Sequence record: PP777464.1
Length of the DNA stretch: 64,000 bases
Direction: 5' to 3' (one strand)
Of this stretch, positions 1 through 64,000 are shown piece by piece; within the stretch, counting starts at the first letter, position 1, and every line of letters begins with the position of its first letter. Below the pieces are notes generated by a model. The model ran no database searches. It worked only from the letters and a program-made list of their open reading frames with translations, and was not told the DNA's origin. The translations under genes and the position numbers were made by a program.

Positions 1-2
1 TC

Positions 3-407
3 ATGACTACTACTAATCAAGCTCGGTCCATCGCCAACGATAAAAATCATGCTGCAATGGTCGCTGGTTACATTGAAGCTATGCAATTCAGTACTGTACA
101 CAATGAGAACGGCGATTACCTGGAAGATTATGAGTTATCTGATGAAGCACGTCAAGCGGCGGTGATTGCATGTTCTCGCTTCATTGAGAAACACGGTAAT
201 GATCTGGAAGTAGTTCGCGGTATGTTTATTGATTACGGTTATGAGCAAGCTGGTCATGATCTGTTCCTTACCCGCGAAGGTCACGGAACTGGTTTTTGGG
301 ATCGTGGTTTAGGTCACTATGGCGATGTATTCACGAAGTACTGCGAAGAAATCAACGTTTGCGATCCCTATGTAGGCGATGATAATCTAATCTATATGGG
401 CGAATAA
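3..407 (+). CDS. Conserved phage early protein, acidic, with GHDxxLTRxGHGxGFWDR motif; function unknown
   Basis: 134-aa ORF with AGHDLFLTREGHGTGFWDRG, a motif I recall from other phage hypothetical proteins; upstream context cut by window edge. Confidence 0.7.
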   Translation: MTTTNQARSIANDKNHAAMVAGYIEAMQFSTVHNENGDYLEDYELSDEARQAAVIACSRFIEKHGNDLEVVRGMFIDYGYEQAGHDLFLTREGHGTGFWDRGLGHYGDVFTKYCEEINVCDPYVGDDNLIYMGE

Positions 408-413
408 AAGTAT

Positions 414-441
414 TTGACAAAGTATATCAGTACTGTATAAT
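414..441 (+). promoter_or_regulatory. Early sigma70 promoter
   Basis: TTGACA 414-419, 16-bp spacer containing CAGTACTG, TATAAT 436-441; leader hairpin GGGGAGA-actat-TCTCCCC 454-472. Confidence 0.85.
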
Positions 442-496
442 AGTTTACATCAAGGGGAGAACTATTCTCCCCACACCAATAAAAGGAAACAAAATT

Positions 497-769
497 ATGT
501 CCAGCTACTCCGCTACTATGATCATTAAAGATATGAACGGTAATCCTACTTCTGCTGGTGGATCATTTGGAAATATTAACTTAGATGGGCGGTTATCCAT
601 GCAATCAGCCATCGATACAGCGAAAGAAGTTTTTAAGAATGAATGTACTGTTAGTAAGCTGGATTATATGGGATTCGCTATCGAGAAAACTACTCGTTTT
701 GTGAACTACAAAAATCCACTGATGATTGATACTAACCTGAAAGCTAACGAAGTGGGGTACTTATTATGA
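497..769 (+). CDS. Hypothetical early protein
   Basis: 90 aa, AAGGA SD, directly behind promoter 414. Confidence 0.8.
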   Translation: MSSYSATMIIKDMNGNPTSAGGSFGNINLDGRLSMQSAIDTAKEVFKNECTVSKLDYMGFAIEKTTRFVNYKNPLMIDTNLKANEVGYLL

Positions 770-957
770 CAGTAGAAGAAGTTAAAAAAGTACTGGCAGT
801 ACTACGATATCATAATCATTGCAAGGTGAAGAATGATCCTGATTATCTTGATTCATCCCTGGAGGAAGACACCTTGAACGCTATAAGCCATATGCAGACA
901 TTAGCAAAGCGTATGACTGAAAAGAACATGCCGGACTATATCGGAAATAAAATTTAA
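766..957 (+). CDS. Hypothetical early protein
   Basis: 63 aa, ATGA overlap with upstream stop. Confidence 0.7.
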   Translation: MTVEEVKKVLAVLRYHNHCKVKNDPDYLDSSLEEDTLNAISHMQTLAKRMTEKNMPDYIGNKI

Positions 958-964
958 AAAGTAC

Positions 965-992
965 TTGCATTGTAGTTAGATTAACGTATAAT
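965..992 (+). promoter_or_regulatory. Early sigma70 promoter
   Basis: A-tract, AGTACT 960-965, TTGCAT-16-TATAAT; leader hairpin 1005-1026. Confidence 0.85.
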
Positions 993-1044
993 GTTTTATA
1001 TCGAGAGGGGGAAATGGTTTCCCCTCAAGTCCAGGAGATACACC

Positions 1045-1308
1045 ATGAACACTATCGAAATCACTATCAATGCACACGTATACGACAACGTAGTACTGCA
1101 AACTACTATGACCGCCAATGATACCAGTACTTTGCGGAATACTGTTATTAGTGCCGTATGTGCCGCTATCGGTGATGTCGCCCTGGAAAATGCAAAACAC
1201 GTAAACGATGGTTTCACTATGTGCAAACGTGATAACGCAAAACATATCATCGTGGAAGGTTACGGCGGTGTAGAATTTAATGTTTATATGAAAAAAGTAC
1301 TTGCATAA
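1045..1308 (+). CDS. Hypothetical early protein
   Basis: ORF 991-1308; start moved to ATG 1045 (AGGAG SD; upstream part is promoter/hairpin). Confidence 0.8.
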   Translation: MNTIEITINAHVYDNVVLQTTMTANDTSTLRNTVISAVCAAIGDVALENAKHVNDGFTMCKRDNAKHIIVEGYGGVEFNVYMKKVLA

Positions 1309-1328
1309 TAACTAAAACAAAGTATAAT
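1301..1328 (+). promoter_or_regulatory. Early sigma70 promoter
   Basis: AAAAAAGTAC-TTGCAT-16-TATAAT; hairpin GGGGGAG-atatc-CTCCCCC 1339-1357. Confidence 0.85.
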
Positions 1329-1375
1329 GTTTTGCATAGGGGGAGATATCCTCCCCCACTAAAAGGAGTAATAAA

Positions 1376-1600
1376 ATGGCTAACTTTGATGAACTGATGC
1401 GGGAAGTAGCTAACCTGGCAGAAGAGAAGAAATCATTCGATTCTATCTATAACACCGCTCACCGTGATTCAGTACTGGCATGTAACCAGGATCAAAAAGA
1501 TGAACTAATCGCCACCTATCATGAAGCATGGAAGTACTACCGACAATGGGAGAAAGAAGAAAGTGAGTCTACCATTGACGGCCTCAATAATCTAATCTAA
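1376..1600 (+). CDS. Hypothetical early protein, helical
   Basis: 74 aa, AAGGAG SD. Confidence 0.8.
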   Translation: MANFDELMREVANLAEEKKSFDSIYNTAHRDSVLACNQDQKDELIATYHEAWKYYRQWEKEESESTIDGLNNLI

Positions 1601-1619
1601 AAGTTTTATTTCAGTACTA

Positions 1620-1648
1620 TTGACATAGCTTGATAGTACTGATGTAAT
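1620..1648 (+). promoter_or_regulatory. Probable early sigma70 promoter
   Basis: TTGACA 1620-1625, TGTAAT 1643-1648, AGTACT upstream and in spacer. Confidence 0.6.
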
Positions 1649-1676
1649 AACTTTACTAACTACAAGGGGAAACATA

Positions 1677-1934
1677 ATGGATCAGTTCACACAATATCGG
1701 GTAAATCCACAAGCTATGGCCTACGTAGAAGACCATAAAACGTTACCAGTACTGCAACCAGTTAAAGGCCATATCTATCGTGCAATGTCGTGGTGTACGG
1801 CCCAGGATGGCTATAAAACCGTAGCCGTGGGTATGTATTGCGGTGATGGTGAATGGTTTGATCCAAATAATCCGGTAGCCATTGACAGTACTGAAAAAAT
1901 GAAATGGGCCGACTACATCGAAGATATTTCATAA
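1677..1934 (+). CDS. Hypothetical early protein
   Basis: 85 aa, AAGGGG SD. Confidence 0.8.
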   Translation: MDQFTQYRVNPQAMAYVEDHKTLPVLQPVKGHIYRAMSWCTAQDGYKTVAVGMYCGDGEWFDPNNPVAIDSTEKMKWADYIEDIS

Positions 1935-1941
1935 AAACTAT

Positions 1942-1969
1942 TTGACAGTACTAACCAATAATGTATAAT
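1942..1969 (+). promoter_or_regulatory. Early sigma70 promoter
   Basis: TTGACA-16-TATAAT, AGTACT overlapping -35; hairpin GCGGGGGAA-tag-TTCTCCCGC 1982-2002. Confidence 0.85.
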
Positions 1970-2024
1970 GTTTTACATAGAGCGGGGGAATAGTTCTCCC
2001 GCCAATAGTTTGGAGTAAAACATT

Positions 2025-2225
2025 ATGTCTATCGCTATCGCCCTGGTTGAAGTACTGAAAGAAGCTAAAGCCAACCAGATCGACGTAAAGATCCAGGAAC
2101 TACAAAACGGCTTAATCGGCTGTACTTGTACCGCTGGTGGAGCGGCAGACTATCGAGAACACGAATCACTCGAATCACTGGTTCGGTATCTTACCATGAT
2201 CGTTGATGATTGGAGAATCATCTAA
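2025..2225 (+). CDS. Hypothetical early protein
   Basis: 66 aa, GGAG SD. Confidence 0.8.
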   Translation: MSIAIALVEVLKEAKANQIDVKIQELQNGLIGCTCTAGGAADYREHESLESLVRYLTMIVDDWRII

Positions 2226-2240
2226 CAAAAAAGAATAAAA

Positions 2241-2268
2241 AAAGGGATTGACTCCGGTCAGTCCCTTT
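2241..2268 (+). terminator. Hairpin terminator overlapping a promoter (TTGACT 2248-2253, TATTAT 2271-2276)
   Basis: AAAGGGATTGAC-tccg-GTCAGTCCCTTT 12-bp stem after a stop codon. Confidence 0.7.
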
Positions 2269-2388
2269 GCTATTATATACGCATAGACAAAAACTAGCCC
2301 ACAGGGTGCATAGGTGTATCCAAAATATATAGTTAATAACGGTGAGTAACTATCTGCTGGTGGAACTAAAACTATTAATAAAAAAGTA

Positions 2389-2417
2389 TTGACAAAGTAT
2401 ATCAGTACTGCAATAAT
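2389..2417 (+). promoter_or_regulatory. Early sigma70 promoter
   Basis: TTGACAAAGTATATCAGTACTG identical to promoter 414; AATAAT -10. Confidence 0.75.
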
Positions 2418-2470
2418 GTATCTCGTAGGGCGGCAATGGTGCGACGGCCCACAAAGTTAGGAGATTCACC

Positions 2471-2803
2471 ATGAGTACTTCAATCGCTATCGTTAAAGCT
2501 TTCATCCGTACTAATGTTTCCTCTGTATTCATCGACGGCCTCGACCGTAACGTAGAATACTCAATCATTATCGCACAAACGGCAAACGGTTCTCGGTACA
2601 TCCTGAATGATAGTGAAGCAAATCACTACTACTTCACTAAAGCCACTGGCTTTAAACGCATCGATGCTGATGTAGTATACGCTAAGATGAATAAGCTGGT
2701 AGATAAGATTAACGCTAAAGGTACTATAGATTTACAGTACTGGACCGAAACCGATCCAGAGTATGGATCTCACCGCTACCTGAATCCAGGTATCAAAATG
2801 TAA
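2471..2803 (+). CDS. Hypothetical early protein
   Basis: 110 aa, AGGAG SD. Confidence 0.85.
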   Translation: MSTSIAIVKAFIRTNVSSVFIDGLDRNVEYSIIIAQTANGSRYILNDSEANHYYFTKATGFKRIDADVVYAKMNKLVDKINAKGTIDLQYWTETDPEYGSHRYLNPGIKM

Positions 2804-2810
2804 AAAGTAC

Positions 2811-2838
2811 TTGCATAGTACTTAGATTCATGTATAAT
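2811..2838 (+). promoter_or_regulatory. Early sigma70 promoter
   Basis: TTGCAT-16-TATAAT, with AGTACT at 2806 and 2817; hairpin GAGGGGGAA..TTCTCCCTC 2851-2872. Confidence 0.85.
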
Positions 2839-2892
2839 GTTTTACATAGAGAGGGGGAAATGGTTCTCCCTCCTAAATTAAGGAGTTTTATC

Positions 2893-3294
2893 ATGACCTT
2901 CTCAATCACTTCCTTCGCTGACGTTTTAGTACTGGCCCGGACTTTTGGTAAAGATGCACTGGAGTACGCTGTAAGTAATGGCACTATCCAACCGGAACAG
3001 TGCCGCATCATTGGAAACTGCAAACGTTGGGCGGTTTCCAATACTATTGCACTGGAAAACTTCCACGATGGCAACAATGAATATTCTGTTGATGTAGTAT
3101 TCGAAGCCGTTGATCTCGGCGGTATCTATAATACTAACCTGAATGATGTGCGTATCGTTCGCACTGGGTTCGGTGCTTATGATGTATCTATTCGTGAAGC
3201 TATGAACACCGGATACATTAGCAAGGACTTACTTGCTCACATCATGCAGCTGTGTACGGAACGTAACGAAGCACGCACTATCTTAGGACTGTAA
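2893..3294 (+). CDS. Hypothetical early protein
   Basis: ORF 2830-3294; start moved to ATG 2893 behind AAGGAG. Confidence 0.8.
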   Translation: MTFSITSFADVLVLARTFGKDALEYAVSNGTIQPEQCRIIGNCKRWAVSNTIALENFHDGNNEYSVDVVFEAVDLGGIYNTNLNDVRIVRTGFGAYDVSIREAMNTGYISKDLLAHIMQLCTERNEARTILGL

Positions 3295-3318
3295 GCGTTA
3301 CACATCACCAAACATCAT

Positions 3319-3338
3319 AGGCCGCCTTGTAGCGGCCT
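3319..3338 (+). terminator. Intergenic GC hairpin (terminator or processing site)
   Basis: AGGCCGC-cttgta-GCGGCCT, weak U tract. Confidence 0.5.
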
Positions 3339-3362
3339 TAACTATATCAGGAGTACATACAC

Positions 3363-3572
3363 ATGATCTATACAGTATACAACGTTCTAGGCACTATTGC
3401 AGGCGTACATGATAACGTCGATGGTGCTATGCGTACAGTACTGCAACAGGTTCCACTAAAGCCTAAGACCATTAAGCAGATGACAGCACGACTAACCAGG
3501 GCGACGGCTGGCGTGGAAGTATGGCAGGACTATGGGGATACACAGATAATCGTAAGCGTAACGAAGGATTAA
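3363..3572 (+). CDS. Hypothetical early protein
   Basis: 69 aa, AGGAG SD. Confidence 0.75.
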   Translation: MIYTVYNVLGTIAGVHDNVDGAMRTVLQQVPLKPKTIKQMTARLTRATAGVEVWQDYGDTQIIVSVTKD

Positions 3573-3596
3573 TGCGTAAAAGGATTTAGTACTGAA

Positions 3597-3668
3597 TCAT
3601 AAAAAAGTCAAGGCATTTTTAAACTTCAGCGTTAAAAAAATGCATAGGTAATCCCTTGACTTTTATGA
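3597..3668. repeat. Nested imperfect inverted repeat
   Basis: TCATAAAAAAGTCAAGG / CCTTGACTTTTATGA enclosing GCATTTTTAAAC / GTTAAAAAAATGC. Confidence 0.65.
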
Positions 3669-3763
3669 ATAAAAAGGGATTGGACTATGGCAAAATGCGT
3701 AGGGGGCTAAAGGGCGGGTAACCTTAGCGACTTCGATAAAGGGGTATTACTTATAAAATGTTA

Positions 3764-3791
3764 TTGACTTTTTATATGAATCGTATATTAT
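3764..3791 (+). promoter_or_regulatory. Promoter for F1 array
   Basis: TTGACT 3764-3769, 16 bp, TATTAT 3786-3791; GGAG SD before 3822. Confidence 0.6.
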
Positions 3792-3821
3792 TGGATTGAT
3801 ATTATTTTTAATGGAGTCCCT

Positions 3822-4019
3822 ATGCGTATTTTAACTCAAGAAGAGCACAACCACACACTCATATCCAACATGGCATATATCCTACATATGTCACATATCC
3901 GTGGTATTGCATATAAGCGTGAATTGGTTATGAAACTTTTCATAGGAACTAACTATCAAGAAAAGTATATCGAACTATACTTACAAGAATTACGAAGGGA
4001 CATAAAAGGTAGACTATGA
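3822..4019 (+). CDS. F1 paralog 1
   Basis: FIGTNYQEKY. Confidence 0.88.
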   Translation: MRILTQEEHNHTLISNMAYILHMSHIRGIAYKRELVMKLFIGTNYQEKYIELYLQELRRDIKGRL

Positions 4020-4216
4020 AAATGCGTATTTTAAATAAAGAAGATTATCAAGAACTGTTACGTAAAAACATGGTAAAGATTTATAACACAGACACAAACT
4101 TAGAACGAATTGAGTTATACCTTTTGATTACATTGGGTACAAGCTATCAGGGAAGATGGGTGATTCAATATATGGATGCATTGAAAAATGAAATATTGTC
4201 CACGAGGAAACAATGA
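4016..4216 (+). CDS. F1 paralog 2
   Basis: LGTSYQGRW. Confidence 0.88.
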   Translation: MKMRILNKEDYQELLRKNMVKIYNTDTNLERIELYLLITLGTSYQGRWVIQYMDALKNEILSTRKQ

Positions 4217-4422
4217 AAACTATAACACGAACCCAATCATTCGGTCTTATCTTGAAATACATGGACTTAATGTTTGATATCAGCAAAGACCTTTCTAAAA
4301 CTGAAATCCAAGTTGCAAGAGCAGAGATCCGCATGTTGGCTGTACTGAACACAAACCATCAGGAAGAGTATGTTGACGATTGGATTCATTTTTTAATAGA
4401 AGATATTAAGAGTAAACTATGA
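4213..4422 (+). CDS. F1 paralog 3
   Basis: LNTNHQEEY. Confidence 0.88.
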   Translation: MKTITRTQSFGLILKYMDLMFDISKDLSKTEIQVARAEIRMLAVLNTNHQEEYVDDWIHFLIEDIKSKL

Positions 4423-4631
4423 TTTTTTTAACACCAGAAGAATATAAGATACGTTTTGTTTCTGTCCAGAATAAAATCTTAATTATATACAATTCAAATG
4501 CAGACCTTAACTTATCAAGGGTATTAGAAAAAGATTTACTTATGGGTGCATTTTTGGATACAGACTTTCAGGTGTATTATGTAGGGGAATACTTAATTGC
4601 ACTCCAGAATTACATTAAGAGTAAACTATGA
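4419..4631 (+). CDS. F1 paralog 4
   Basis: LDTDFQVYY. Confidence 0.88.
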   Translation: MIFLTPEEYKIRFVSVQNKILIIYNSNADLNLSRVLEKDLLMGAFLDTDFQVYYVGEYLIALQNYIKSKL

Positions 4632-4840
4632 ATAGCATTAACTCAAATCTATATACCGAACGCGTCGCTGCAAGACAACTTGAAATTCTCATAGTATATG
4701 AAGAGACTGAGGATTTGAACTTAGCATTAGTATTGGAAAATGATATACTATTGGGTGCATTCCTCGGCACAGACTATCAGGAGCACTTCTTGAATGAGTA
4801 TATAATTGCACTCCAGAAATACATTAAGAGCAAACTATGA
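4628..4840 (+). CDS. F1 paralog 5
   Basis: LGTDYQEHF; close sister of paralog 4. Confidence 0.88.
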   Translation: MNSINSNLYTERVAARQLEILIVYEETEDLNLALVLENDILLGAFLGTDYQEHFLNEYIIALQKYIKSKL

Positions 4841-5055
4841 AACATTTAAGTAATTCCGAGAAGAATAAAATTATCATTGCTGCAATAAACAAATATTTTA
4901 CACTTCCTCACACAGAAGGTTTATGTGTAAGGGAACACAGGATAAACACCACCGATATACGCATGATGGCTGTACTGGGGACGAACTTTCAGGAAGAGTA
5001 TGTTGTTGCACACATAGTTGCCCTCACTGATTTAATAAGGGACAAATGCAAATGA
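4837..5055 (+). CDS. F1 paralog 6
   Basis: LGTNFQEEY. Confidence 0.88.
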   Translation: MKHLSNSEKNKIIIAAINKYFTLPHTEGLCVREHRINTTDIRMMAVLGTNFQEEYVVAHIVALTDLIRDKCK

Positions 5056-5270
5056 AAGACATAAACACCCAAGAATATCTTAAACGATTAGAACAAGGGA
5101 AGAACTTTAGACTTCAAGTTTACGATGATGAATCACTAACATCCAATGAAAAGTATGTTATACTAACAGACTCAACATTAATACCATTTGTAGGAACAAA
5201 CTATCAGGAGGTTATGGTTGACAACCACATCACGGCCTTAAAATGTCATGTCAGGGATTTAGGTAAATGA
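5046..5270 (+). CDS. F1 paralog 7
   Basis: VGTNYQEVM. Confidence 0.88.
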   Translation: MQMKDINTQEYLKRLEQGKNFRLQVYDDESLTSNEKYVILTDSTLIPFVGTNYQEVMVDNHITALKCHVRDLGK

Positions 5271-5524
5271 AACACTTAACACTAGATGAATATGAAACTA
5301 TAGTCCGTAAACTAACCCCTATAGCAAGGATAGTCTACGATGACCCCAGCCTTACATGGAACCAAATGCGAGCTAAAGTTAATGAGCTATGGTTGCTGTA
5401 CTTTATGGGGACTCAATATCAAGATAAGTTTTGCACAGAATATGTCGAACAATTAATGAATGTTATACAGGATAAACTAGATGATTATTGGCTCACAAAA
5501 CATGAAGACTTTATCAGGAGTTGA
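5267..5524 (+). CDS. F1 paralog 8
   Basis: MGTQYQDKF. Confidence 0.88.
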   Translation: MKHLTLDEYETIVRKLTPIARIVYDDPSLTWNQMRAKVNELWLLYFMGTQYQDKFCTEYVEQLMNVIQDKLDDYWLTKHEDFIRS

Positions 5525-5753
5525 GTATCAAACTGCCCTATTCTCTTTAATCCATGCCCTTAGAAAAAACAATGCCTTACATGGTGCACCTGAAGTGGAT
5601 GTTATCAACGGTGAACTTTATCTTATGAAATTCATTGGAACAAACTATCAAGATCTGTTCATTCAACGATACTTATCAGCATTAAGAAACCAAATCCAAT
5701 ATAAAACCCAGAGAGCCAAAAAAGAATGGAATAAAAAATGCGACACAGACTAA
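5502..5753 (+). CDS. F1 paralog 9
   Basis: IGTNYQDLF; start moved from 5481 to match family N-terminus MKTLSGVEY. Confidence 0.85.
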   Translation: MKTLSGVEYQTALFSLIHALRKNNALHGAPEVDVINGELYLMKFIGTNYQDLFIQRYLSALRNQIQYKTQRAKKEWNKKCDTD

Positions 5754-5989
5754 ATCACAAAATGTATTGTAAACTATTACAGACACTGGCACAGAAACAC
5801 TATGACACGGTATCTGGAATATTACCCTATGATATCATGCGTTTACTTCACTGTGAGGCCGAGATGCTTGTACTGATGACAGGCACAGATAAAAACGCAA
5901 TTGCCAAATCAATAGATATGTTCATCGAAGCACAATGTCAACACATTAGAACCGAGATATGGAGGCGAGAGAATGATAACACTAAATGA
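5738..5989 (+). CDS. F1 paralog 10 (divergent)
   Basis: MTGTDKNAI, motif degenerate. Confidence 0.75.
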   Translation: MRHRLNHKMYCKLLQTLAQKHYDTVSGILPYDIMRLLHCEAEMLVLMTGTDKNAIAKSIDMFIEAQCQHIRTEIWRRENDNTK

Positions 5990-6188
5990 GTATCAGTATC
6001 ATTGGAGGTTACAAGCTATAAGAAGGAAAGTTGTTAGTATTTCTTTAGACAAGTCTATTGCACAAGAGGACAAATGTGTTATAATAGCTGAAATGAAGTT
6101 GGGTGCATTCGTAGGAACAAACTATCAAAACATCTACACTGACGTATTGTTAAGTGCCTTACGTAACAAGGTGATATCAAAAGAATGA
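5973..6188 (+). CDS. F1 paralog 11
   Basis: VGTNYQNIY. Confidence 0.88.
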   Translation: MITLNEYQYHWRLQAIRRKVVSISLDKSIAQEDKCVIIAEMKLGAFVGTNYQNIYTDVLLSALRNKVISKE

Positions 6189-6403
6189 GAAAATTACAAG
6201 GCTTTGAATACATCAGACTCCTGAAAACATGTGCCAACAGAAGAGTAAAGATTCAATCTGATAAGAGCATCCCTGCCAACCTAAAACATGCATTGATAGC
6301 TGAACTCTATGCAGGGGCACTCATAGGGACAAACTATCAACAAATGTATATAGACATGTGGGTTGATGCATTAGTCAAGGAGATCCAAAGTAAATGCAAA
6401 TGA
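6185..6403 (+). CDS. F1 paralog 12
   Basis: IGTNYQQMY. Confidence 0.88.
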   Translation: MRKLQGFEYIRLLKTCANRRVKIQSDKSIPANLKHALIAELYAGALIGTNYQQMYIDMWVDALVKEIQSKCK

Positions 6404-6642
6404 TTAATTTAAGTAAATCTGAATATAAAGAACGCCAAGCAAAAATCTTACCTAAACTTAATGAAATCCATTTCGGTGAAGTAAACAAACACGAAAATAA
6501 GATGATTATGAAGCGTGAGACAAAGCTATGTGCATTCTTAGGAACTAACTATCAGGAGTATTATGTAGAGGAATATATAATTACACTTAAGAAATACATT
6601 GGAAGTAAACTAAGTAAACGTGCGAGAAATGCAAATGATTAA
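6394..6642 (+). CDS. F1 paralog 13
   Basis: LGTNYQEYY. Confidence 0.88.
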   Translation: MQMINLSKSEYKERQAKILPKLNEIHFGEVNKHENKMIMKRETKLCAFLGTNYQEYYVEEYIITLKKYIGSKLSKRARNAND

Positions 6643-6847
6643 TTTAAGTAAAGATGAATATTATGAACGTCTTGCAAAAACTTATCCAGCACGTAACGCC
6701 GTTTATAATAGTAACATTATTGAACGCTCAAAGAAGTTGATTGTAGTAAATGAGATTAAGATGCTTTCAGTCTTAGGAACAAACTATCAAGAGAATGCTG
6801 TACTGTTGTTAATTGATGCCCTCAAGAGAGAGATACAAAGTAAATGA
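6629..6847 (+). CDS. F1 paralog 14
   Basis: LGTNYQENA; MQM start at 6629. Confidence 0.88.
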   Translation: MQMINLSKDEYYERLAKTYPARNAVYNSNIIERSKKLIVVNEIKMLSVLGTNYQENAVLLLIDALKREIQSK

Positions 6848-7092
6848 TTAATTTATCTTTCCATGAATATCAAAAACGTTTAAATGCATCAAGGGATATA
6901 AGGATTCAAATCTTCAATAACAAAAGATTGAAACCTGACACCAGAAGAATCAAAATAATAGAAGCAGAGTTATGCAACTTCCTGGGGACGAACCATCAGG
7001 AAGGTAAGATAAAAAACTATCTTAGAGAACTCATGATTTGTATCGAAAATAAATGTGAGGTTGATGAACATGCAAATGATCAATTTAAGTAA
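6844..7092 (+). CDS. F1 paralog 15
   Basis: LGTNHQEGK. Confidence 0.88.
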   Translation: MINLSFHEYQKRLNASRDIRIQIFNNKRLKPDTRRIKIIEAELCNFLGTNHQEGKIKNYLRELMICIENKCEVDEHANDQFK

Positions 7093-7333
7093 AGATGAAT
7101 ATACCGAGCGTATGACAAAAATTACGCACAAACGTAATACAATCTATCACAACCCAGAAATTCAACACAGTAAGAAAATGATTATGATGCGTGAGTTAAA
7201 GATGGGTGTATTCTTAGGAACAAACTATCAAGAGCCAGAAGTAAATCGATTAATTGCTGAGTTACTATTGGAAATCAAAGGTAAGCTGTACTTTTATCAA
7301 ATGACCCAACCACTGAGGTGTACTGATCGATGA
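7070..7333 (+). CDS. F1 paralog 16
   Basis: LGTNYQEPE; MQM start at 7070 behind GAGG. Confidence 0.88.
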   Translation: MQMINLSKDEYTERMTKITHKRNTIYHNPEIQHSKKMIMMRELKMGVFLGTNYQEPEVNRLIAELLLEIKGKLYFYQMTQPLRCTDR

Positions 7334-7581
7334 ATGCGATGAATATTGTGAATAACATCAGATTAGCAGAAAGATTTGATAGAATTGGGGAAGCACTGAG
7401 AAGATACGATAAAGAATATGGTCATTTGAGCTTTTCTATAGAAAAGAGATATGAACTTGAAGCAGAGTTTAAAATGCAGAGTCTCTTAGGCACACAGTAT
7501 CAAAACCAATATATTCAAACTTGGATTGATTGTTTAATCCAGACAATTTATGTAAGAAACATTAAATGCAAAATGAAATGA
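7330..7581 (+). CDS. F1 paralog 17
   Basis: LGTQYQNQY. Confidence 0.88.
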   Translation: MNAMNIVNNIRLAERFDRIGEALRRYDKEYGHLSFSIEKRYELEAEFKMQSLLGTQYQNQYIQTWIDCLIQTIYVRNIKCKMK

Positions 7582-7802
7582 TATACTTAACACATGATGA
7601 GTTAACAGAAAGACTAGATAAATCCAAAAGACTTACAAATCAACTTCCTCACAACCCAAACCAAACCCCAGCGGAAAGGAGTGCAGAAGTTTTATTCCAA
7701 AGATTACCATACCTTCTTGGAACTGATAGGCAAGAGTATCATGTTGAACGTATAATTAAATATCTCAAAATTACTATTATGGAAAAAGTAAATGCAAAAT
7801 GA
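7566..7802 (+). CDS. F1 paralog 18
   Basis: LGTDRQEYH. Confidence 0.88.
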   Translation: MQNEMIYLTHDELTERLDKSKRLTNQLPHNPNQTPAERSAEVLFQRLPYLLGTDRQEYHVERIIKYLKITIMEKVNAK

Positions 7803-8049
7803 AATGAAATACTTAACAGACGATGAGTTAAAAGAACGATTAATTAAATCCAGAAAACTTACAAATCAACTTCCAAACGACACAAACAAGTCACATGCCG
7901 AAAGGAGTGCAGAAGTTTTATACATTCAACTCCTGTACTTTCTTGGAACTGACAGACAAGAGTATTACATTGAAAGTATGCTTCGATATCTTAAATTCTC
8001 TATAAAGGAAAAGGTACATGCTCAAGAATTTAAAAATCCTAACAGTTAA
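7792..8049 (+). CDS. F1 paralog 19
   Basis: LGTDRQEYY; close sister of paralog 18. Confidence 0.88.
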   Translation: MQNEMKYLTDDELKERLIKSRKLTNQLPNDTNKSHAERSAEVLYIQLLYFLGTDRQEYYIESMLRYLKFSIKEKVHAQEFKNPNS

Positions 8050-8260
8050 TGAATATCATAAGATTGTAATGAAAACTAATAGTGCAATATCTAAAAAATC
8101 AAACCCAAAGTACATACTGGAACACACATTCGAAGAACGTCAATTAGCTTTAGTTGAAGCAAAACTTCTTGCACTCCTAGGAACAAACTATCAGGAAGAA
8201 TACATCAGAAAACTAATATACCTTTTAACTAAACACATCAGGAAAAGAAAAAAAGCATGA
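8018..8260 (+). CDS. F1 paralog 20
   Basis: LGTNYQEEY. Confidence 0.88.
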   Translation: MLKNLKILTVNEYHKIVMKTNSAISKKSNPKYILEHTFEERQLALVEAKLLALLGTNYQEEYIRKLIYLLTKHIRKRKKA

Positions 8261-8487
8261 AGCACTTGACAGATGATGAACATGGGCTTATAGTAATGGA
8301 TGTAATCAACATCGAATACAAAAAGTTGATACGCTACCGTTGTTATGAAGATAAGCAACTCGTTCTAGCAGAACAGAAGTTGTTTCGACTCTTAAACACA
8401 AACTTCCAAGCACAATACGAAGAATCGTATTTGTACCTACTGTCGAGGAAAGCAAAAAGAGATTATGAAAATTTTAAGCCACAGTGA
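8257..8487 (+). CDS. F1 paralog 21
   Basis: LNTNFQAQY. Confidence 0.88.
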   Translation: MKHLTDDEHGLIVMDVINIEYKKLIRYRCYEDKQLVLAEQKLFRLLNTNFQAQYEESYLYLLSRKAKRDYENFKPQ

Positions 8488-8680
8488 ACAAACAGAATTG
8501 TTAATCTTTAATACAAGTAAATTCTTAAACATAACATTGTCTGATATAGATGAGGATGAAAAAGAGTTACTTAGAGCAGATTTAAGAGTTCTTTTATATG
8601 TTGGAACTAACTTCCAAGAGCAATTCGTTGAGGACTACATCGATGAACTTAAAGAATCTGTACTGAGAACATGCAAATGA
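8465..8680 (+). CDS. F1 paralog 22
   Basis: VGTNFQEQF. Confidence 0.88.
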   Translation: MKILSHSEQTELLIFNTSKFLNITLSDIDEDEKELLRADLRVLLYVGTNFQEQFVEDYIDELKESVLRTCK

Positions 8681-8913
8681 AAATCCTTTCACCAAGTGAA
8701 TACCACGAACTATTAAGTAGTTTAATTCTAAAATTGTATATAGCAAAGACCACAGATTTACCTGATGAAGAAAAAAATATTCTAATGAGTGAAATCTATG
8801 TTAATTCTACCCTAGGGACTAACTATCAAGAATGTAATATTAATGATTACATCAAAGAACTAAAAAGGTTTATCCAATGCAAATGCGAATCATTACCGAC
8901 GAAGAATACCTAA
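8671..8913 (+). CDS. F1 paralog 23
   Basis: LGTNYQECN. Confidence 0.88.
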   Translation: MQMKILSPSEYHELLSSLILKLYIAKTTDLPDEEKNILMSEIYVNSTLGTNYQECNINDYIKELKRFIQCKCESLPTKNT

Positions 8914-9128
8914 CAATCATAAATGGACTGTTTTCGAAGTTATTTGCCATTAACACATCAAAACTTCCAGATACTGATAAAATTATTAAGTTAAATGAAA
9001 TCTACGTTCAAGCTACTCTAGGAACAAACTATCAAGAAGCCAATGTGTATAATTACATTAATACACTCAAAAGGGTAATAAAATTAAAATGCACAGACAG
9101 CACAAACAGCCAATACACAAACCCCTAG
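8877..9128 (+). CDS. F1 paralog 24
   Basis: LGTNYQEAN; sister of paralog 23. Confidence 0.88.
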   Translation: MQMRIITDEEYLTIINGLFSKLFAINTSKLPDTDKIIKLNEIYVQATLGTNYQEANVYNYINTLKRVIKLKCTDSTNSQYTNP

Positions 9129-9328
9129 GAACAGCAGAATACATTGAACTAATGGCTGCAAACTTCTCATCCTTTAAGAAACTGATGCAAGAATCAAATA
9201 ATGATTTAGAATATCATATCAAAAGTTCAGATTTAAGATTACTACTCACTCTAGGAACAGACAGTCAGTACAAATTCGTACAGGAGCATATTAGAGCACT
9301 TTTAAATGGCATCAGGGATAAACTATGA
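9089..9328 (+). CDS. F1 paralog 25
   Basis: LGTDSQYKF. Confidence 0.85.
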   Translation: MHRQHKQPIHKPLGTAEYIELMAANFSSFKKLMQESNNDLEYHIKSSDLRLLLTLGTDSQYKFVQEHIRALLNGIRDKL

Positions 9329-9540
9329 AGGAAATATCAAATCAAGAGTACTTGGCACTATTCAGGAAGAATAATCACAAATATATGGCACTTGATTCAA
9401 GAACTGATATAAGTGAACTTCAGAAAAATCTTTTGCGTTCAGAGATGATAGTACTGACACTCTTAGGAACACAGCATCAAGAGAGAACTGTTAATTCACA
9501 CATAGAGATTCTTATGCAGATAGTACAGGAAAAGATATGA
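9325..9540 (+). CDS. F1 paralog 26
   Basis: LGTQHQERT. Confidence 0.88.
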   Translation: MKEISNQEYLALFRKNNHKYMALDSRTDISELQKNLLRSEMIVLTLLGTQHQERTVNSHIEILMQIVQEKI

Positions 9541-9758
9541 GAATCATAACACAACAAGATATGCTTAAGTTCGCAAGGGTTCATGCATCTGAATTTGATG
9601 CTATATTATCAAAAAGTTACAACAACCCTTATACACAAGATGTACATTACAGTGAATTATGGATGTATATACTTTTAGGTACAGATCATCAAGAGCAAGC
9701 AGTACAGAAGTATTTGAGAGCTTTACGTGATGCTACAGCTAATGGAGTACATGTTTAA
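9537..9758 (+). CDS. F1 paralog 27
   Basis: LGTDHQEQA. Confidence 0.88.
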   Translation: MRIITQQDMLKFARVHASEFDAILSKSYNNPYTQDVHYSELWMYILLGTDHQEQAVQKYLRALRDATANGVHV

Positions 9759-9759
9759 T

Positions 9760-10011
9760 ATGAAAGTACTGACAGAACTAGAAATGTATCATAGATTTAA
9801 TAAGTACTATCATTTACTTAAGCCTATACAGAGAATTAAATGTCCATTTGAAGAGAAACAGGTTTTAATCTATGAGCACAAGTTCTTTGTATCATTAGGT
9901 ACAGATCAACAAGAGTACTATTTGACGTTGTACTTGATTACATTAATAGATTTCATTCACTATAAAACCACACAATCTAAACAAGCTAATAAAGAGAAAT
10001 ATGAAAACTAA
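9760..10011 (+). CDS. F1 paralog 28
   Basis: LGTDQQEYY; start probably 9760 (MKVLTELE), ORF open from 9727. Confidence 0.85.
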   Translation: MKVLTELEMYHRFNKYYHLLKPIQRIKCPFEEKQVLIYEHKFFVSLGTDQQEYYLTLYLITLIDFIHYKTTQSKQANKEKYEN

Positions 10012-10339
10012 TATAAAACTCAAGGTATATAAATCATTTGCAAGTACATACATCAAATGCCATACATGTAACTCTGTAATGGACTACAAAGGTAAGCCAT
10101 TTGCACTTACTTATGATAATACAAGAGGTTTTTATATATCTTTTGCTGATTACAAATATAACATATACGAACACATTGACATTGAAGATTTAAGTACTTT
10201 ATCTGAAGAGGAATACTTTCAAGAATCATTAGTATGGGATTTGGAGTTTCCTATGCCATTAGTACATAAGATGATAGTACTAATAAAAGAAACTAAACCT
10301 GTACCTAATGGTTATGAAGAACACATTATTGAGTATTAA
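10001..10339 (+). CDS. F2 protein (EExxFQxSL family)
   Basis: LSEEEYFQESLVWD. Confidence 0.88.
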   Translation: MKTNIKLKVYKSFASTYIKCHTCNSVMDYKGKPFALTYDNTRGFYISFADYKYNIYEHIDIEDLSTLSEEEYFQESLVWDLEFPMPLVHKMIVLIKETKPVPNGYEEHIIEY

Positions 10340-10353
10340 TATATAAGGTAACT

Positions 10354-10695
10354 ATGAAAACTAATATACAACTCAATGTATACAGTTCAGAAGAACATAC
10401 ATATATCAAATGCAGTCTATGTAAAGATGTAATGGACTACAAGGGTAAGCCATTCACAATTACTTATGATTCTTATGTTAATGATTTATATATATCATTT
10501 CTTAATTACGAAAAGAAAATATACAAGCACGTTGATATTAAAGATTTAAGTACTTTATCTGAAGAAGAATACTTTCAAGAATCATTAGTATGGGATTTAG
10601 AATTTCCTATGCCATTAGTACATAAAATGGTAGTCCTAATGAAAGAAACTAAACCGGAGTTTAATGGTTATGAAGAACACATCGTTGAGTACTAA
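10354..10695 (+). CDS. F2 protein, recent duplicate of 10001
   Basis: LSEEEYFQESLVWD; C-terminal third nearly identical to 10001. Confidence 0.88.
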   Translation: MKTNIQLNVYSSEEHTYIKCSLCKDVMDYKGKPFTITYDSYVNDLYISFLNYEKKIYKHVDIKDLSTLSEEEYFQESLVWDLEFPMPLVHKMVVLMKETKPEFNGYEEHIVEY

Positions 10696-10698
10696 ACA

Positions 10699-10923
10699 AT
10701 GAAAATATTATCATACAAAGATTACCGCAAGCTTCGCGGTATTTTGCGACCAGAAATTCAAAGAATTAATTCTCTTCCTATATCTAATGCAGAATGTTCA
10801 GTACTGAAAGATGAGTTAATATTAAAACACACAGTAGGAACTAACTATCAAGCTGATAGTGTTCGATATCTAATTTGGGGATTAATATGCATAGTAAAGG
10901 AAAAACAAGCTCAAGTACTGTGA
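10699..10923 (+). CDS. F1 paralog (dispersed)
   Basis: VGTNYQADS. Confidence 0.85.
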   Translation: MKILSYKDYRKLRGILRPEIQRINSLPISNAECSVLKDELILKHTVGTNYQADSVRYLIWGLICIVKEKQAQVL

Positions 10924-11249: not shown

Positions 11250-11250
11250 C

Positions 11251-11279
11251 TTGACAGTACTTTTCATTACTGATATAGT
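11251..11279 (+). promoter_or_regulatory. sigma70 promoter
   Basis: TTGACA-17-TATAGT with TG extension; AGTACT overlapping -35. Confidence 0.7.
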
Positions 11280-11308
11280 ACCTGTACGTTAATCATGGGG
11301 TAAAAATT

Positions 11309-11877: not shown

Positions 11878-11886
11878 GAGAAGAAT

Positions 11887-16340: not shown

Positions 16341-16342
16341 GT

Positions 16343-61615: not shown

Positions 61616-61634
61616 TCATTTATAGGAGGTAATT

Positions 61635-62426
61635 ATGAAATTTGTTGTAACGTCAGACGTACACGGTGGCACTGATTACCTCCATAGTGGTGATTACAGT
61701 GATACAGTACTGATTATTGCTGGGGATTTTGATGAAGTTAAACGTAGTCGTTATCGTACTGGCATCGAATCCCTGTGCAAGCAGTTCAAGAATGTAGTAC
61801 TGGTTCCTGGTAATCATGAGTACTACGGTTCAAACATTCACAAGACTAATAAAGTACTGTCCGATATGCAAGATGAGATTCCAAATTTCATCTTTTTGCA
61901 AAACAAATTTGTATGGCTGGATGGTGTACTGCTGGTTGGTAGTACACTGTGGACTGACTTTGATAAAGGCAACGCACTGGTTAAGTTTGATGCTCAACAA
62001 AAGATGAATGATTATAAACACATTCGTCATGGAACAACATCAGAACCGTGGAAACGTAAGCTCAAACCTGATGATGTTGAGTTCATGCATCATCAGGATA
62101 AACAATTTATCAAAAATTCAGTTAACACAGTTCGTCTAATGAATGATAATGATTTCAAGGTTGTGGTGGTAACACATCATGCACCAAGTTATCAGAGTGT
62201 ATCTCCGAGATACAAGAATGACTCACTGAATGGATGTTATTGTTCTGATATGGACCAGTACATCGAAGATTTGGGTGCTGATGTTTGGATTCATGGTCAC
62301 GTTCATAGTAGCTTTGACTACAACATTGGGAAAACTCGTATCATTTGTAATCCAAGAGGTTATGAATCTTACAGTGGTGCATGTGAGAACTTCGATTACG
62401 ATCCTAAATTTGTATTTGAAATCTAA
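61635..62426 (+). CDS. Calcineurin-like metallophosphoesterase
   Basis: SDVH, AGD, PGNHEYY, G.TLWTDF, THHAPS, HGHVH, NPRGY. Confidence 0.92.
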   Translation: MKFVVTSDVHGGTDYLHSGDYSDTVLIIAGDFDEVKRSRYRTGIESLCKQFKNVVLVPGNHEYYGSNIHKTNKVLSDMQDEIPNFIFLQNKFVWLDGVLLVGSTLWTDFDKGNALVKFDAQQKMNDYKHIRHGTTSEPWKRKLKPDDVEFMHHQDKQFIKNSVNTVRLMNDNDFKVVVVTHHAPSYQSVSPRYKNDSLNGCYCSDMDQYIEDLGADVWIHGHVHSSFDYNIGKTRIICNPRGYESYSGACENFDYDPKFVFEI

Positions 62427-62435
62427 GGAATTACT

Positions 62436-62831
62436 ATGATATATACATTGCATATAAAAGACAAAATGCTTGTTATATTGGGTAGCTGTCATTTGTATCG
62501 ACGATGGGGTATGCGTATACTATACTCTTGTGATAAAACCCAATACTACAATCCTGATGGTACTGGCACTGTGATGAAAGATAGGTATAACTTCACCAGT
62601 GATGTAAGACAAGCAGACGATTTGGATTCATTTGTGGGAAAGGTGTATGTTCTTGTACATGATGATAGTCGTGGTGATGTGTTACCATTCAGTACTTTAT
62701 CAATTAATACGTTCTTTAAATACGAACAATTTTCAAATTCACTAAGAATGATTGAGATTGATTTTGATGACATCCCAGTTGGTATACGATATGAATTTCT
62801 TCATGCTCTTGCGTCAATAGGGGTGTACTGA
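62436..62831 (+). CDS. Hypothetical protein
   Basis: 131 aa, AAGGA SD. Confidence 0.8.
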   Translation: MIYTLHIKDKMLVILGSCHLYRRWGMRILYSCDKTQYYNPDGTGTVMKDRYNFTSDVRQADDLDSFVGKVYVLVHDDSRGDVLPFSTLSINTFFKYEQFSNSLRMIEIDFDDIPVGIRYEFLHALASIGVY

Positions 62832-63214
62832 TGGAAAATATCGTTGTGTATGTAATTGAGTACAATGATGAAATAAAGTACGTAATTAATGGTTATAAAC
62901 ATTACTCCAGTGCAGCCAGAAAGCTGGAAATATATTCAAAAGAAGCAAGAAACTACTGCTTAGATGATGATTCAGTTGAGGTTTGGATTGATGGAAATGC
63001 AGAGTACTTTGATGCTAACTTCTATGAAGATCTTGACAAATCAAATGAATTATACATTTATGTAGAAAATGAACGTTATTACACAAATTCTTTGTTTGAC
63101 ATTACCGACTCTACGGTGTATGATAATGCTATGGTTAAGTTGTTAAAGATTGACCACGATATGTTTAATAAACATACAATTTGCGGTTTACTCGATTTTT
63201 TAAGAAACTTGTAG
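62831..63214 (+). CDS. Hypothetical protein, acidic
   Basis: 127 aa, TGATG-coupled. Confidence 0.8.
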   Translation: MENIVVYVIEYNDEIKYVINGYKHYSSAARKLEIYSKEARNYCLDDDSVEVWIDGNAEYFDANFYEDLDKSNELYIYVENERYYTNSLFDITDSTVYDNAMVKLLKIDHDMFNKHTICGLLDFLRNL

Positions 63215-63239
63215 ACAAATACGAACACTGTGATATAAT
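63212..63239 (+). promoter_or_regulatory. sigma70 promoter for clpP
   Basis: TAGACA-16-TATAAT, with TGTGA just upstream of the -10. Confidence 0.7.
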
Positions 63240-63273
63240 ACTCACATCAATGAAACAATAGAGGAAAATAACA

Positions 63274-63969
63274 ATGGTTGAACAATTCAATTTTGGTGGT
63301 TATGCTGGTGGTGAAGTTCGCGACATTTCTATTCCTTATGTAGTTGAAAAAGTTAATGGTGCAGAACGTACTTATGATCTAGCATCTCGTATGATGCAAG
63401 ACCGTATCATTTTCCTTGATACTGACTTCAATGACCAAATGGCACATATCATCAAGCAACAATTGGTGTGGTTGGATTCTCAGGGTTCTGAACCAATTAC
63501 CTTCTACATTAGTTCTCCTGGTGGTTCAGTACACGCAGGTTTAGGTATCGCTGACATTGCTAAGTCTTGTGTATCTCCTATCCGTACAGTAGTAATGGGT
63601 TATGCAGCATCAATGGGTTGCTATACACAATCAGTAGTTGGTACTAAAGGTTTCCGTCTAGGCGGGAAGCGTTCTTACTTCATGTGTCACCAAGTAAGTT
63701 CCGGTACTCAGGGTCTGATTACTGATCAGAAGATTTCCTTGAAACACTCTGATGCATTGAACACACTACTGACTAAAGAAATTGCTGAAGCAGTTGGTGT
63801 ATCACACGAACAACTACTGAAAGATGCGGATCGTGACCTGTGGTTGAACGCTGAAGAAGCACTCGAATACGGTGAACATGGTTTCATTGATGGTATCATC
63901 CTTGGTCCACGCAACGAAGAAGGTAAGTATCTCGTCAAACGTCGCGGTGGCGTGGAAGAGTGGGTCTAA
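63274..63969 (+). CDS. clpP: ClpP protease proteolytic subunit
   Basis: E...D..SR...DRIIFL, YISSPGGSV.AG, G.AASMG (catalytic Ser), CHQ (His), D.DRD. Confidence 0.93.
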   Translation: MVEQFNFGGYAGGEVRDISIPYVVEKVNGAERTYDLASRMMQDRIIFLDTDFNDQMAHIIKQQLVWLDSQGSEPITFYISSPGGSVHAGLGIADIAKSCVSPIRTVVMGYAASMGCYTQSVVGTKGFRLGGKRSYFMCHQVSSGTQGLITDQKISLKHSDALNTLLTKEIAEAVGVSHEQLLKDADRDLWLNAEEALEYGEHGFIDGIILGPRNEEGKYLVKRRGGVEEWV

Positions 63970-63986
63970 TTTGAATTTCATTTGAT

Positions 63987-64000
63987 GCCTCATTTGGGGC
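63987..64000 (+). terminator. Probable terminator cut by the window end
   Basis: GCCTC-attt-GGGGC after the clpP stop. Confidence 0.4.

Follow-up and report, generated by a model that had tools for sequence, protein, structure and literature searches.

Genomic context of the window

The DNA analyzed here is a window of 64,000 nucleotides that matches Escherichia phage fEgEco12 (PP777464.1, 374,733 bp, Asteriusvirus) with 99.7 to 100% identity, and its subject is the palindromic hexamer AGTACT, which recurs along most of it. Window position 1 corresponds to coordinate 16,745 of the record, and the offset is 17,269 from window position 12,000 onward. The fEgEco12 genome has direct terminal repeats of 20,993 bp (PMC13070987), the left of which covers the window from position 1 to approximately 4,250. 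Nearly all window genes are on the plus strand. Genome-wide figures for fEgEco12 come from the public record, which is near-identical to the window, and omit 200 bases around the counterpart of the run of N in the window. The feature from which the analysis starts is the following:

1-64,000, dispersed AGTACT sites (n = 200), preferred 8-mer CAGTACTG

Enrichment of AGTACT in the window

AGTACT occurs 200 times in the window, whereas base composition predicts 21 occurrences and a first-order Markov model 18. It has the highest z-score among all 4,096 hexamers, and it is isolated among the 64 palindromic ones, with a 9.3-fold enrichment and a runner-up at 2.1-fold. The first-pass annotation had counted, by eye, about 25 copies in the first 3.6 kb; there are exactly 25 at positions 1-3600, where local composition predicts approximately 1.1. 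It had also described the word as over-represented throughout and dense from 20 to 64 kb. The latter was borne out (159 sites, 3.6 per kb over 20.4 to 64 kb), but the distribution is not uniform, with zero sites in 3,594-9,346 and in 11,753-20,377.

Two comparisons had been set beforehand as refuting tests, and neither refutes the enrichment. Within genes, 171 sites were observed versus 49.1 ± 5.6 after a synonymous-codon shuffle (z = 21.6) and 22.9 ± 4.8 after a codon-order shuffle. AGTACT also exceeds the other WGTACW words of the window, namely AGTACA (124), TGTACA (45) and TGTACT (38). These results confirmed that the enrichment is real and not a coding artefact. Wholly within one called open reading frame (ORF) were 170 of the 200 sites, the other 30 being intergenic or lying across an ORF boundary. 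The sites in ORFs are spelled in every frame, as AGT-ACT (69), xAG-TAC-Txx (41) and xxA-GTA-CTx (60); T never precedes AGTACT in the second of these frames because TAG is a stop codon. Spacers are denser in AGTACT (4.4 per kb) than genes (2.9 per kb).

The letters next to the word are also biased. C is preferred at position -1 (84 of 200) and G at +1 (87 of 200), yielding the 8-mer CAGTACTG, while the least-used letters are G at -1 (20 of 200) and C at +1 (11 of 200). This C and G preference was seen in spacers and in two reading frames. No information was found beyond ±1 and, therefore, AGTACT is not part of a longer repeat or of a repeat family. Given a GTAC core, A...T is the only enriched pair of outer letters (3.9-fold, odds ratio of 3.2), the other 15 pairs reaching at most 0.99-fold, showing that the whole palindrome is read, and not half of it, as by a symmetric dimer. 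CGTACG and GGTACC are absent from fEgEco12.

Selection on the word

The complete fEgEco12 genome contains 1,115 AGTACT versus 116 to 126 expected. Their density is approximately 2 to 3 per kb everywhere, including blocks of minus-strand genes, and approximately 6.5 per kb in the terminal repeats. The encoded proteins carry the imprint of the word. Genome-wide, 52% of Ser-Thr dipeptides are written AGT-ACT (411 observed, 121 expected), and in the proteome Ser-Thr (786 versus 530 expected) and Val-Leu (762 versus 594) are in excess, while the reverse dipeptides Thr-Ser and Leu-Val are at expectation. The proteome is bent to keep AGTACT, at a measurable cost to the proteins.

Conservation of the sites was analyzed by aligning the window to phage 121Q (83% identity over 56.9 kb, gap neighbourhood excluded). 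AGTACT is kept in 121Q at 134 of 178 sites (75%), compared with 42% for all hexamers and 41% for hexamers of the same composition, which ranks it first among 301 frequent hexamers. Per-base divergence is 0.03 to 0.13 within the word and 0.12 to 0.21 in its flanks. All six positions are protected, C the least, which makes a drive by very-short-patch (VSP) repair unlikely, and this candidate was rejected. In the genome body, the sites are also more evenly spread than expected. Their number per bin of 0.5 to 2 kb is under-dispersed in three genera (variance/mean of 0.70 to 0.88), 13 bins of 1 kb are empty instead of 26, and the longest gap is 1,976 bp versus approximately 2,700 bp expected. The evenness in phages CBB and Kae01 is like that in fEgEco12.

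Could the excess of such a word be a side effect of the amino acids or codons used, of dispersed repeats or of mutation bias, or could the word be read in RNA? Codons for Ser, Thr, Val, Leu and Tyr can indeed spell AGTACT, and the window genes lie on one strand. Yet the enrichment survives both shuffles, is higher in spacers, is equal in minus-strand gene blocks and has no context past ±1 that would betray a repeat family. The protection of all six positions, with C the least, is unlike VSP drive, and palindromy is useless in single-stranded RNA. As sole cause, a by-product is refuted and hardly deserves further consideration. Positive selection on the DNA word, as proposed in the first-pass annotation, is strongly supported by its presence in all frames, the codon shuffle, the site-level conservation and its retention across the clade (see below).

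A comparable case is HIP1 (GCGATCGC) of cyanobacteria, also a short palindrome, many-fold enriched genome-wide, intragenic in any frame, conserved above background and of unproven function (PMC4390886). With HIP1, AGTACT shares the genome-wide excess, the excess over codon usage in all frames plus spacers, and the conservation above background. HIP1 is chromosomal, 8 bp long and includes the sites of two orphan methyltransferases (PMC4390886), whereas AGTACT has a 6-bp core, belongs to a lytic phage genome, has no evident cognate methyltransferase and is built into promoters.

Phylogenetic spread and contrast with the hosts

We compared word counts among phage genomes, using as control the count of the word read backwards or, for two genomes, a Markov expectation:

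fEgEco12, AGTACT 1,115, control 151
121Q, AGTACT 903, control 134
Salmonella phage SD-15_S21, AGTACT 843, control 134
A4, AGTACT 922, control 146
Erwinia phage Kaldavass, AGTACT 1,114, control 174
Yersinia phage fHe-Yen9-04, AGTACT 1,008, control 137
RaK2, HAGTACTD 836, control 120
GAP32, HAGTACTD 856, control 143
CBB, AGTACT 1,235, Markov expectation 110
Kae01, AGTACT 941, Markov expectation 102

The 8-mer CAGTACTG was counted 151 times in CBB, 68 in Munch, 76 in Kae01, 176 in XbC2 and 233 in JNE01 (controls of 2 to 6). Enrichment was thus present in Asterius-, Alcyoneus-, Mimas- and Eneladusvirus as well as in Kae01 and Munch, that is, in every RaK2-like enterobacterial jumbo phage examined. 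Three distant relatives lack it. PA5oct (MK797984.1) has 15 AGTACT versus 89 expected, the word being among its most depleted hexamers; XacN1 (AP018399.1) has none, but it avoids nearly every 6-bp palindrome; and Atu_ph07 has 16 HAGTACTD versus a control of 70. Unrelated enterobacterial phages likewise show no enrichment (observed/control: T4 29/51, T5 23/40, rV5 16/49, Goslar 15/82, FelixO1 20/31). In Escherichia coli K-12, AGTACT is under-represented, with 400 copies in 4.64 Mb versus a control of 1,147. The phage density (3 per kb) is therefore approximately 35-fold that of E. coli (0.09 per kb), and the number of sites in one phage genome is almost threefold that in the host chromosome.

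Because the enrichment follows a single phage clade across several host genera and does not extend to other phages that infect these hosts, the reader is more likely to be encoded by the phage than by the host. A host protein was nonetheless weighed, the E. coli candidate being the nucleoid-occlusion factor SlmA. Its 12-bp site (GTGAGTACTCAC) has an identical central hexamer, the protein is dimeric and its sites are scattered along the chromosome (PMC3020112). Moreover, early promoters must operate on host proteins alone. The flanks required by SlmA are, however, the very ones disfavoured here (G at -1 and C at +1 being used least), and no outer GT...AC signal was found at ±2-3. Unrelated phages of the same hosts under-represent AGTACT, and the hosts of the clade span several genera. 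We consider a host reader very improbable.

In the genome bodies, the outer flank differs by genus, CAGTAC being more frequent than AAGTAC in Asteriusvirus and AAGTAC more frequent than CAGTAC in CBB and Kae01. Such a shift would be expected if a reader co-evolves with the outer positions of its site. XacN1 also lacks GATC over its whole genome, and approximately 25 different 6-bp palindromes are absent from it.

AGTACT at early promoters

The first-pass annotation had placed AGTACT inside or beside almost every early promoter (429, 960, 1296, 1613/1635, 1947, 2404, 2806/2817) and at 11256. All of these sites do lie in or against a TTGACA/TTGCAT-N16-17-TATAAT element:

414-441, plus strand, early sigma70-type promoter (TTGACA-16-TATAAT), AGTACT at 429-434, one base upstream of the -10
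960-992, plus strand, early promoter, AGTACT at 960-965 overlapping the first T of the -35 (TTGCAT)
1296-1328, plus strand, early promoter, AGTACT at 1296-1301 abutting the -35, architecture as at 960
1613-1648, plus strand, early promoter, two AGTACT 22 bp apart, one upstream of TTGACA (1620-1625) and one in the spacer beside the -10
1942-1969, plus strand, early promoter, AGTACT at 1947-1952 overlapping the end of the -35 (TTGAC-AGTACT)
2389-2417, plus strand, early promoter, AGTACT at 2404-2409, two bases upstream of the -10
2806-2838, plus strand, early promoter, AGTACT flanking the -35 on both sides (2806, 2817)
11251-11279, plus strand, promoter-like element (TTGACA-17-TATAGT), AGTACT at 11256-11261 overlapping the -35

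Across fEgEco12, the word takes fixed positions relative to TTGACA-N16-18-TATAAT elements (counts include both copies of the terminal repeat). It starts at -7/-8 from the -10 hexamer in 44 cases and at -27 from TATAAT, overlapping the first base of the -35, in 22 cases; a further position starts at -17/-18 and overlaps the end of the -35. Pairs of AGTACT 20 to 24 bp apart are approximately twice as frequent as by chance, and most belong to these promoters. An identical layout, AGTACT-[-35]-spacer-AGTACT-n-TATAAT, was found in Pectobacterium phage CBB, a member of another genus.

Judging from these positions, a bound protein would lie over the spacer and the flank of the -35, in the geometry of a repressor. 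The operators of phage early repressors are similarly dyad-symmetric and similarly fixed, flanking the -35 and abutting the -10. Ordinary operators, however, number a handful instead of approximately 1,100, and confinement to regulatory regions was not observed (170 of 200 sites are in ORFs). The earlier suggestion of an operator at early promoters thus agrees with a fixed and conserved placement, but it is not the whole story as approximately 85% of the sites are intragenic.

A putative phage-encoded reader of AGTACT

We propose, with a probability of roughly 0.45, that AGTACT, at best in the form CAGTACTG, is the recognition site of a putative symmetric, phage-encoded reader of double-stranded DNA (dsDNA). 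This reader would be a symmetric and probably dimeric protein of the RaK2-like enterobacterial jumbo-phage clade. With a site kept every 300 to 400 bp or so over the 375-kb genome, and at about twice that density in the terminal repeats, it would occupy almost solely phage DNA. At early sigma70-type promoters, where the site flanks the -35 and abuts the -10, the bound protein would control early transcription, the simplest effect being shut-off. Its genome-wide role could be self-marking or coating, in addition to that of an operator. Selection on the word, palindromic reading, even coverage, fixed promoter positions, clade restriction and rarity in the host were all observed, and from them we infer the protein nature of the reader, its encoding by the phage and the effect of its binding.

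Among the functions suggested in the first-pass annotation, binding by a protein that organises or protects the DNA agrees best with the data, given the whole palindrome, the even genome-wide coverage and the 35-fold host density, although no such protein was found. Protein p6 of phage phi29 is a genome-wide coat that also switches early promoters, and it has no strict sequence motif. The proposed reader would resemble p6 as a genome coat and early-promoter switch and differ from it in recognizing a defined word.

Several observations weigh against this proposal. We searched for the reader with PHROGs (20 proteins), NCBIfam (12 proteins) and a protein atlas (3 proteins). All matches of the 20 candidate or island proteins were to PHROGs of unknown function or to unrelated enzymes (dCMP deaminase, endonuclease VII). 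NCBIfam had no family for ten of the clade-specific proteins of the window, and the atlas yielded nothing usable for two more conserved ones. None of the 32 scanned proteins could be assigned to a DNA-binding family, and no homologue of SlmA, SeqA, MutS, MutL or MutH was found with phmmer in the six-frame ORFs of four phage genomes. The sole lead was a protein with a predicted restriction-endonuclease fold (see below). The intragenic location of most sites is also unlike that of ordinary operators, and duplicated promoter cassettes within the repeat may partly explain the fixed positions. Finally, even coverage fits modification, strand marking or priming equally well, and a modification of the site could itself be what is read.

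Candidate enzymes and absence of GCGC

Three enzymes or candidate enzymes were considered in relation to AGTACT:

43,795-44,319, plus strand, phage N6-adenine (N6A) DNA methyltransferase, Dam family, 174 amino acids (aa) (TIGR01712, 91.8 bits for a cutoff of 97)
48,700-49,437, plus strand, clade-conserved 245-aa protein with a predicted PD-(D/E)XK restriction-endonuclease fold (pLDDT of 92), annotated as hypothetical
279,943-280,803 of PP777464.1 (outside the window), C5 DNA methyltransferase, 286 aa, DNMT3-like, CpG-type

A catalytic-motif search of fEgEco12 identified only these two DNA methyltransferases, the N6A enzyme being the sole amino-methyltransferase. The C5 enzyme aligns over its full length with the catalytic domains of animal DNMT3A and DNMT3B (E-value of 1e-23) and is closer to them than to M.HhaI or M.HaeIII. 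Characterised members of the Dam family methylate GATC. Judged by family, neither methyltransferase seems to point to AGTACT, and the idea in the first-pass annotation of a self-mark for a phage methyltransferase was left without positive support. We still weighed AGTACT as the target of a phage DNA-modifying enzyme, such as the N6A methyltransferase, whose modification would itself protect or mark the DNA. The word contains two adenines, the N6A gene is clade-specific (found in CBB and Kae01, absent from PA5oct and XacN1), HIP1 offers the precedent of an over-represented palindrome linked to orphan methyltransferases (PMC4390886), and the ten enzymes used on fEgEco12 DNA excluded ScaI and RsaI (PMC13070987). 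On the other hand, only Dam-family and CpG-type enzymes emerged from the motif search, and the restriction behaviour of RaK2 is reported to be consistent with Dam, Dcm, CpG and EcoKI-type methylation, and a methylated CpG is reported as well (PMC3622015). Furthermore, a methyltransferase lifts selection against a site, which alone explains neither a 9-fold gain nor a cost to the proteins. Modification is in our opinion an unlikely explanation, though the first to consider after a protein reader.

The predicted restriction-fold protein is encoded 4.4 kb from the N6A methyltransferase, has no adjacent methyltransferase and was found only in the RaK2-like clade, with 53 to 89% identity across it. 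All of the neighbours that a language model assigns to it are type II restriction endonucleases. Structural comparison of the model with VIA-align retrieved ThaI (Z-score of 8.2), NhoI, SfiI, HinP1I, SwaI, NaeI, DpnI, BglI, MspI and EcoRV, and MutH at 5.1; 12 of the 13 best matches among solved structures are type II restriction endonucleases and the remaining one, a Holliday-junction resolvase, shares their fold. The Z-scores are middling, and the weight of this model-based assignment lies in the run of one fold atop the list. A profile search against PDB sequences gave nothing and Foldseek against the PDB gave no significant match, so that the predicted fold comes from VIA-align alone. Residues D52, S63-V-K65 and E92 are invariant and could form an active site, an assignment that we infer.

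The tetranucleotide GCGC is absent from the window and from the whole genomes of fEgEco12, 121Q, CBB and Kae01 (0 versus 178 to 381 expected per genome), compared with 7.9 copies per kb in E. coli. A nuclease does not require a methyltransferase when the genome that encodes it lacks the target, which makes GCGC the most economical target for this protein. We thus consider it a candidate reader of GCGC, AGTACT being a less likely target. ScaI and Eco255I recognize the same 6-bp palindrome as the one enriched here, and the window encodes both an endonuclease-fold protein and a methyltransferase. Phages normally lose restriction sites and short palindromes. AGTACT, unlike such targets, was gained (9-fold) instead of avoided, and the complete absence of GCGC points to another target for the nuclease.

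The alternative is that this protein reads AGTACT to make controlled nicks or cuts, for MutH-like strand discrimination, T5-like nicks or starts of recombination-dependent replication. A 6-bp site needs approximately 10-fold enrichment to equal the density of GATC in E. coli, and the even spacing, with a maximum gap of approximately 2 kb, would suit such a role. So would the confident model, the type II endonuclease and MutH matches, the presumed active-site residues and the clade specificity noted above. The absence of GCGC, however, is classically expected of a word that a genome's own nuclease targets, and GCGC is the more economical target for this protein; HinP1I, which cuts GCGC, is among its structural and feature neighbours, and MutS, MutL and MutH are missing from the six-frame ORFs of the phages. 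In addition, restriction patterns of virion DNA are normal (PMC13070987), though native gels would hide nicks. Nicking at AGTACT appears slightly less probable even than modification, and a protein that binds the site remains our preferred reading.

AGTACT-free stretches and the ACT-free block

Two regions interrupt the coverage of the window:

3,594-9,346, AGTACT-free stretch, tandem array of approximately 25 small paralogous genes just inside and after the left terminal repeat
11,753-20,042, plus strand, ACT-free block of 8.3 kb (PP777464.1 29,020-37,311), approximately 24 small fast-evolving genes with their spacers

In the first region, GTAC occurs as often as expected by chance and ACT has its usual frequency; the AGTACT enrichment is simply missing. 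Its genes code for overlapping paralogues of 70 to 90 aa, in which TGTACT recurs in a common Ala-Val-Leu context. Phage 121Q has the same holes in its AGTACT coverage as the window. A recent foreign origin of the AGTACT-free blocks was rejected because homologues of their genes were found only in Asteriusvirus and 121Q has the holes too.

The hole at 11.8 to 20 kb has a second property, missed in the first-pass annotation: the trinucleotide ACT is banned there. Its plus strand has 0 ACT where approximately 120 are expected, and since the mean spacing in the genome is 48 bp, the block spans 171 mean spacings. The block ends at a spacer with a run of N, and the zero holds for the read letters only. 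AGT, the reverse complement of ACT, occurs at a normal frequency (203 in 8.0 kb). The Thr codon ACT is never used in the block, and a synonymous shuffle of the block's own codons gives 48 ± 5 ACT across codon junctions versus 0 observed. The ban extends to codon junctions and spacers, on the sense strand only. A homologous ACT-free block is present in 121Q (7.5 kb, 161,804-169,313), Kae01 has an ACT-free block of 1.2 kb, and none was found in CBB. The genes of the block belong to PHROG families restricted to Asteriusvirus and without annotated function. They diverge rapidly, with hexamer conservation of 35% versus 121Q, compared with 40 to 45% in the rest of the window, and one of the proteins shares 56% identity with its homologue in 121Q.

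With ACT banned, the block can hold neither AGTACT nor TGTACT, as both words include this trinucleotide. AGTACA is instead approximately 15-fold over composition, with 44 to 45 copies versus 0 TGTACT in 11.8 to 20 kb. Within the genes of the block, 39 AGTACA were observed versus 15 ± 3 after a synonymous shuffle and 5 ± 2 after a codon-order shuffle, and these sites are modestly conserved in 121Q (19 of 38 versus a background of 35%). Selection for AGTACA where ACT is banned indicates that the demand for an AGTACT-like word persists and that A is tolerated at position 6. The asymmetry between AGTACA and TGTACT follows from the ACT ban, so no strand-specific reader is needed. A strand-specific pentamer AGTAC, primase- or Chi-like, was considered and rejected because the block lacks any ACT and because, in the XGTACY table, the full palindrome alone is enriched. 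Polar motifs such as Chi and KOPS are non-palindromic with strand polarity, whereas AGTACT is a palindrome. On the coding strand, AGTACA stays at 3- to 4-fold the genome baseline for approximately 23 kb past the block (an excess noted over 8,000-43,000). As ACT is not depleted there, the ban fails to explain this excess. AGTACA is likewise raised at 20 to 50 kb in Kae01, just after the terminal repeat.

These data also bear on priming. AGTACT could be the preferred template of a phage primase, with an uncopied 3' T and a primer pppGUACU, and as a palindrome it would prime both strands. In T4 and T7, the primase recognizes a short template word whose 3' base is not copied, and its primers are short. 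Even genome-wide coverage would be consistent with such a role, and the minimal trinucleotide would be ACT, the very word banned on one strand in 11.8 to 20 kb. To our knowledge, however, no phage enriches its primase sites, and fixed placement inside promoters is left unexplained. Within the ACT-free block there is strong selection for AGTACA, a word without the presumed 3' T, and we see no reason to bar all priming of one strand over 8 kb. Priming is accordingly regarded as improbable, more so than nicking.

As for the ban itself, immunity of the block's messages to an ACU-cutting endoribonuclease is our leading idea and, by analogy, may be its most natural cause. Toxins of the mRNA-interferase type target ACA, ACY or UUACU (PMC5408214). 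Like the ACA-less and GCU-less mRNAs that escape MazF and MqsR (PMC5408214, PMC9102682), the block has one trinucleotide fully missing from its sense strand. Unlike them, it is a natural and contiguous 8.3 kb in a phage, which encodes no MazF or ChpB homologue: phmmer searches of the six-frame ORFs of the four phage genomes found none of MazF, MazE, ChpB and ChpS. A review describes no RNase that requires exactly ACU (PMC5408214, PMC9102682). A raw RNA run (sample X21) had zero reads on window 9,001-15,000 and was uninformative on transcription or cleavage.

Implications for phage and host discrimination

We found no paper on AGTACT, GTAC, ScaI or GCGC in these phages, and those describing fEgEco12, RaK2 and CBB are silent on the matter. 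Speculatively, the three anomalies might form one oligonucleotide code separating self from host, with AGTACT as a positive mark, GCGC as a negative mark and, in Asteriusvirus, an ACU-less block; we regard this unifying scheme as doubtful. If true, the AGTACT reader would coat or protect phage DNA and gate early promoters, the orphan restriction-fold nuclease would shred GCGC-containing host DNA without needing a methyltransferase, and 8 kb of ACU-less messages would outlast an ACU-specific ribonuclease used for host or early-message shut-off.

In an entire clade of the largest coliphages, a palindrome is enriched at the expense of proteins, the reverse of the textbook loss of palindromes in phages. 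AGTACT thereby offers a handle for finding a new sequence-specific DNA reader, one that should tell phage from host DNA without base modification, and a simple diagnostic signature for these phages in metagenomes. Host enzymes of the ScaI type should be devastating to these phages unless AGTACT is masked. Concrete predictions on the takeover of the host by jumbo phages without a nucleus also follow from the ACT-free block and from the combination of GCGC-free genomes with an orphan nuclease.

Additional observations

A megablast search of window 1-12,000 returned, among its matches, six records named as Campylobacter phages. One feature interrupts the sequence:

19,817-19,866, intergenic, 50 N, assembly gap or mask, flanks collinear with PP777464.1

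The run of N lies between the ORFs at 19,540-19,755 and 19,916-20,329 and is crossed by no reading frame. Its flanks match PP777464.1 at a single offset (17,269) on both sides, with 932 of 932 and 969 of 969 letters identical. Given the equal offset, the run has the same length as that stretch of the record and its flanks are collinear with it. The surrounding spacer (19,760-19,900) contains a G-run, A-runs and, on the right flank, the word TGAAAC. This word resembles TGAAACG, the "-35" of a second promoter class described for CBB, and the ACT-free block terminates there.

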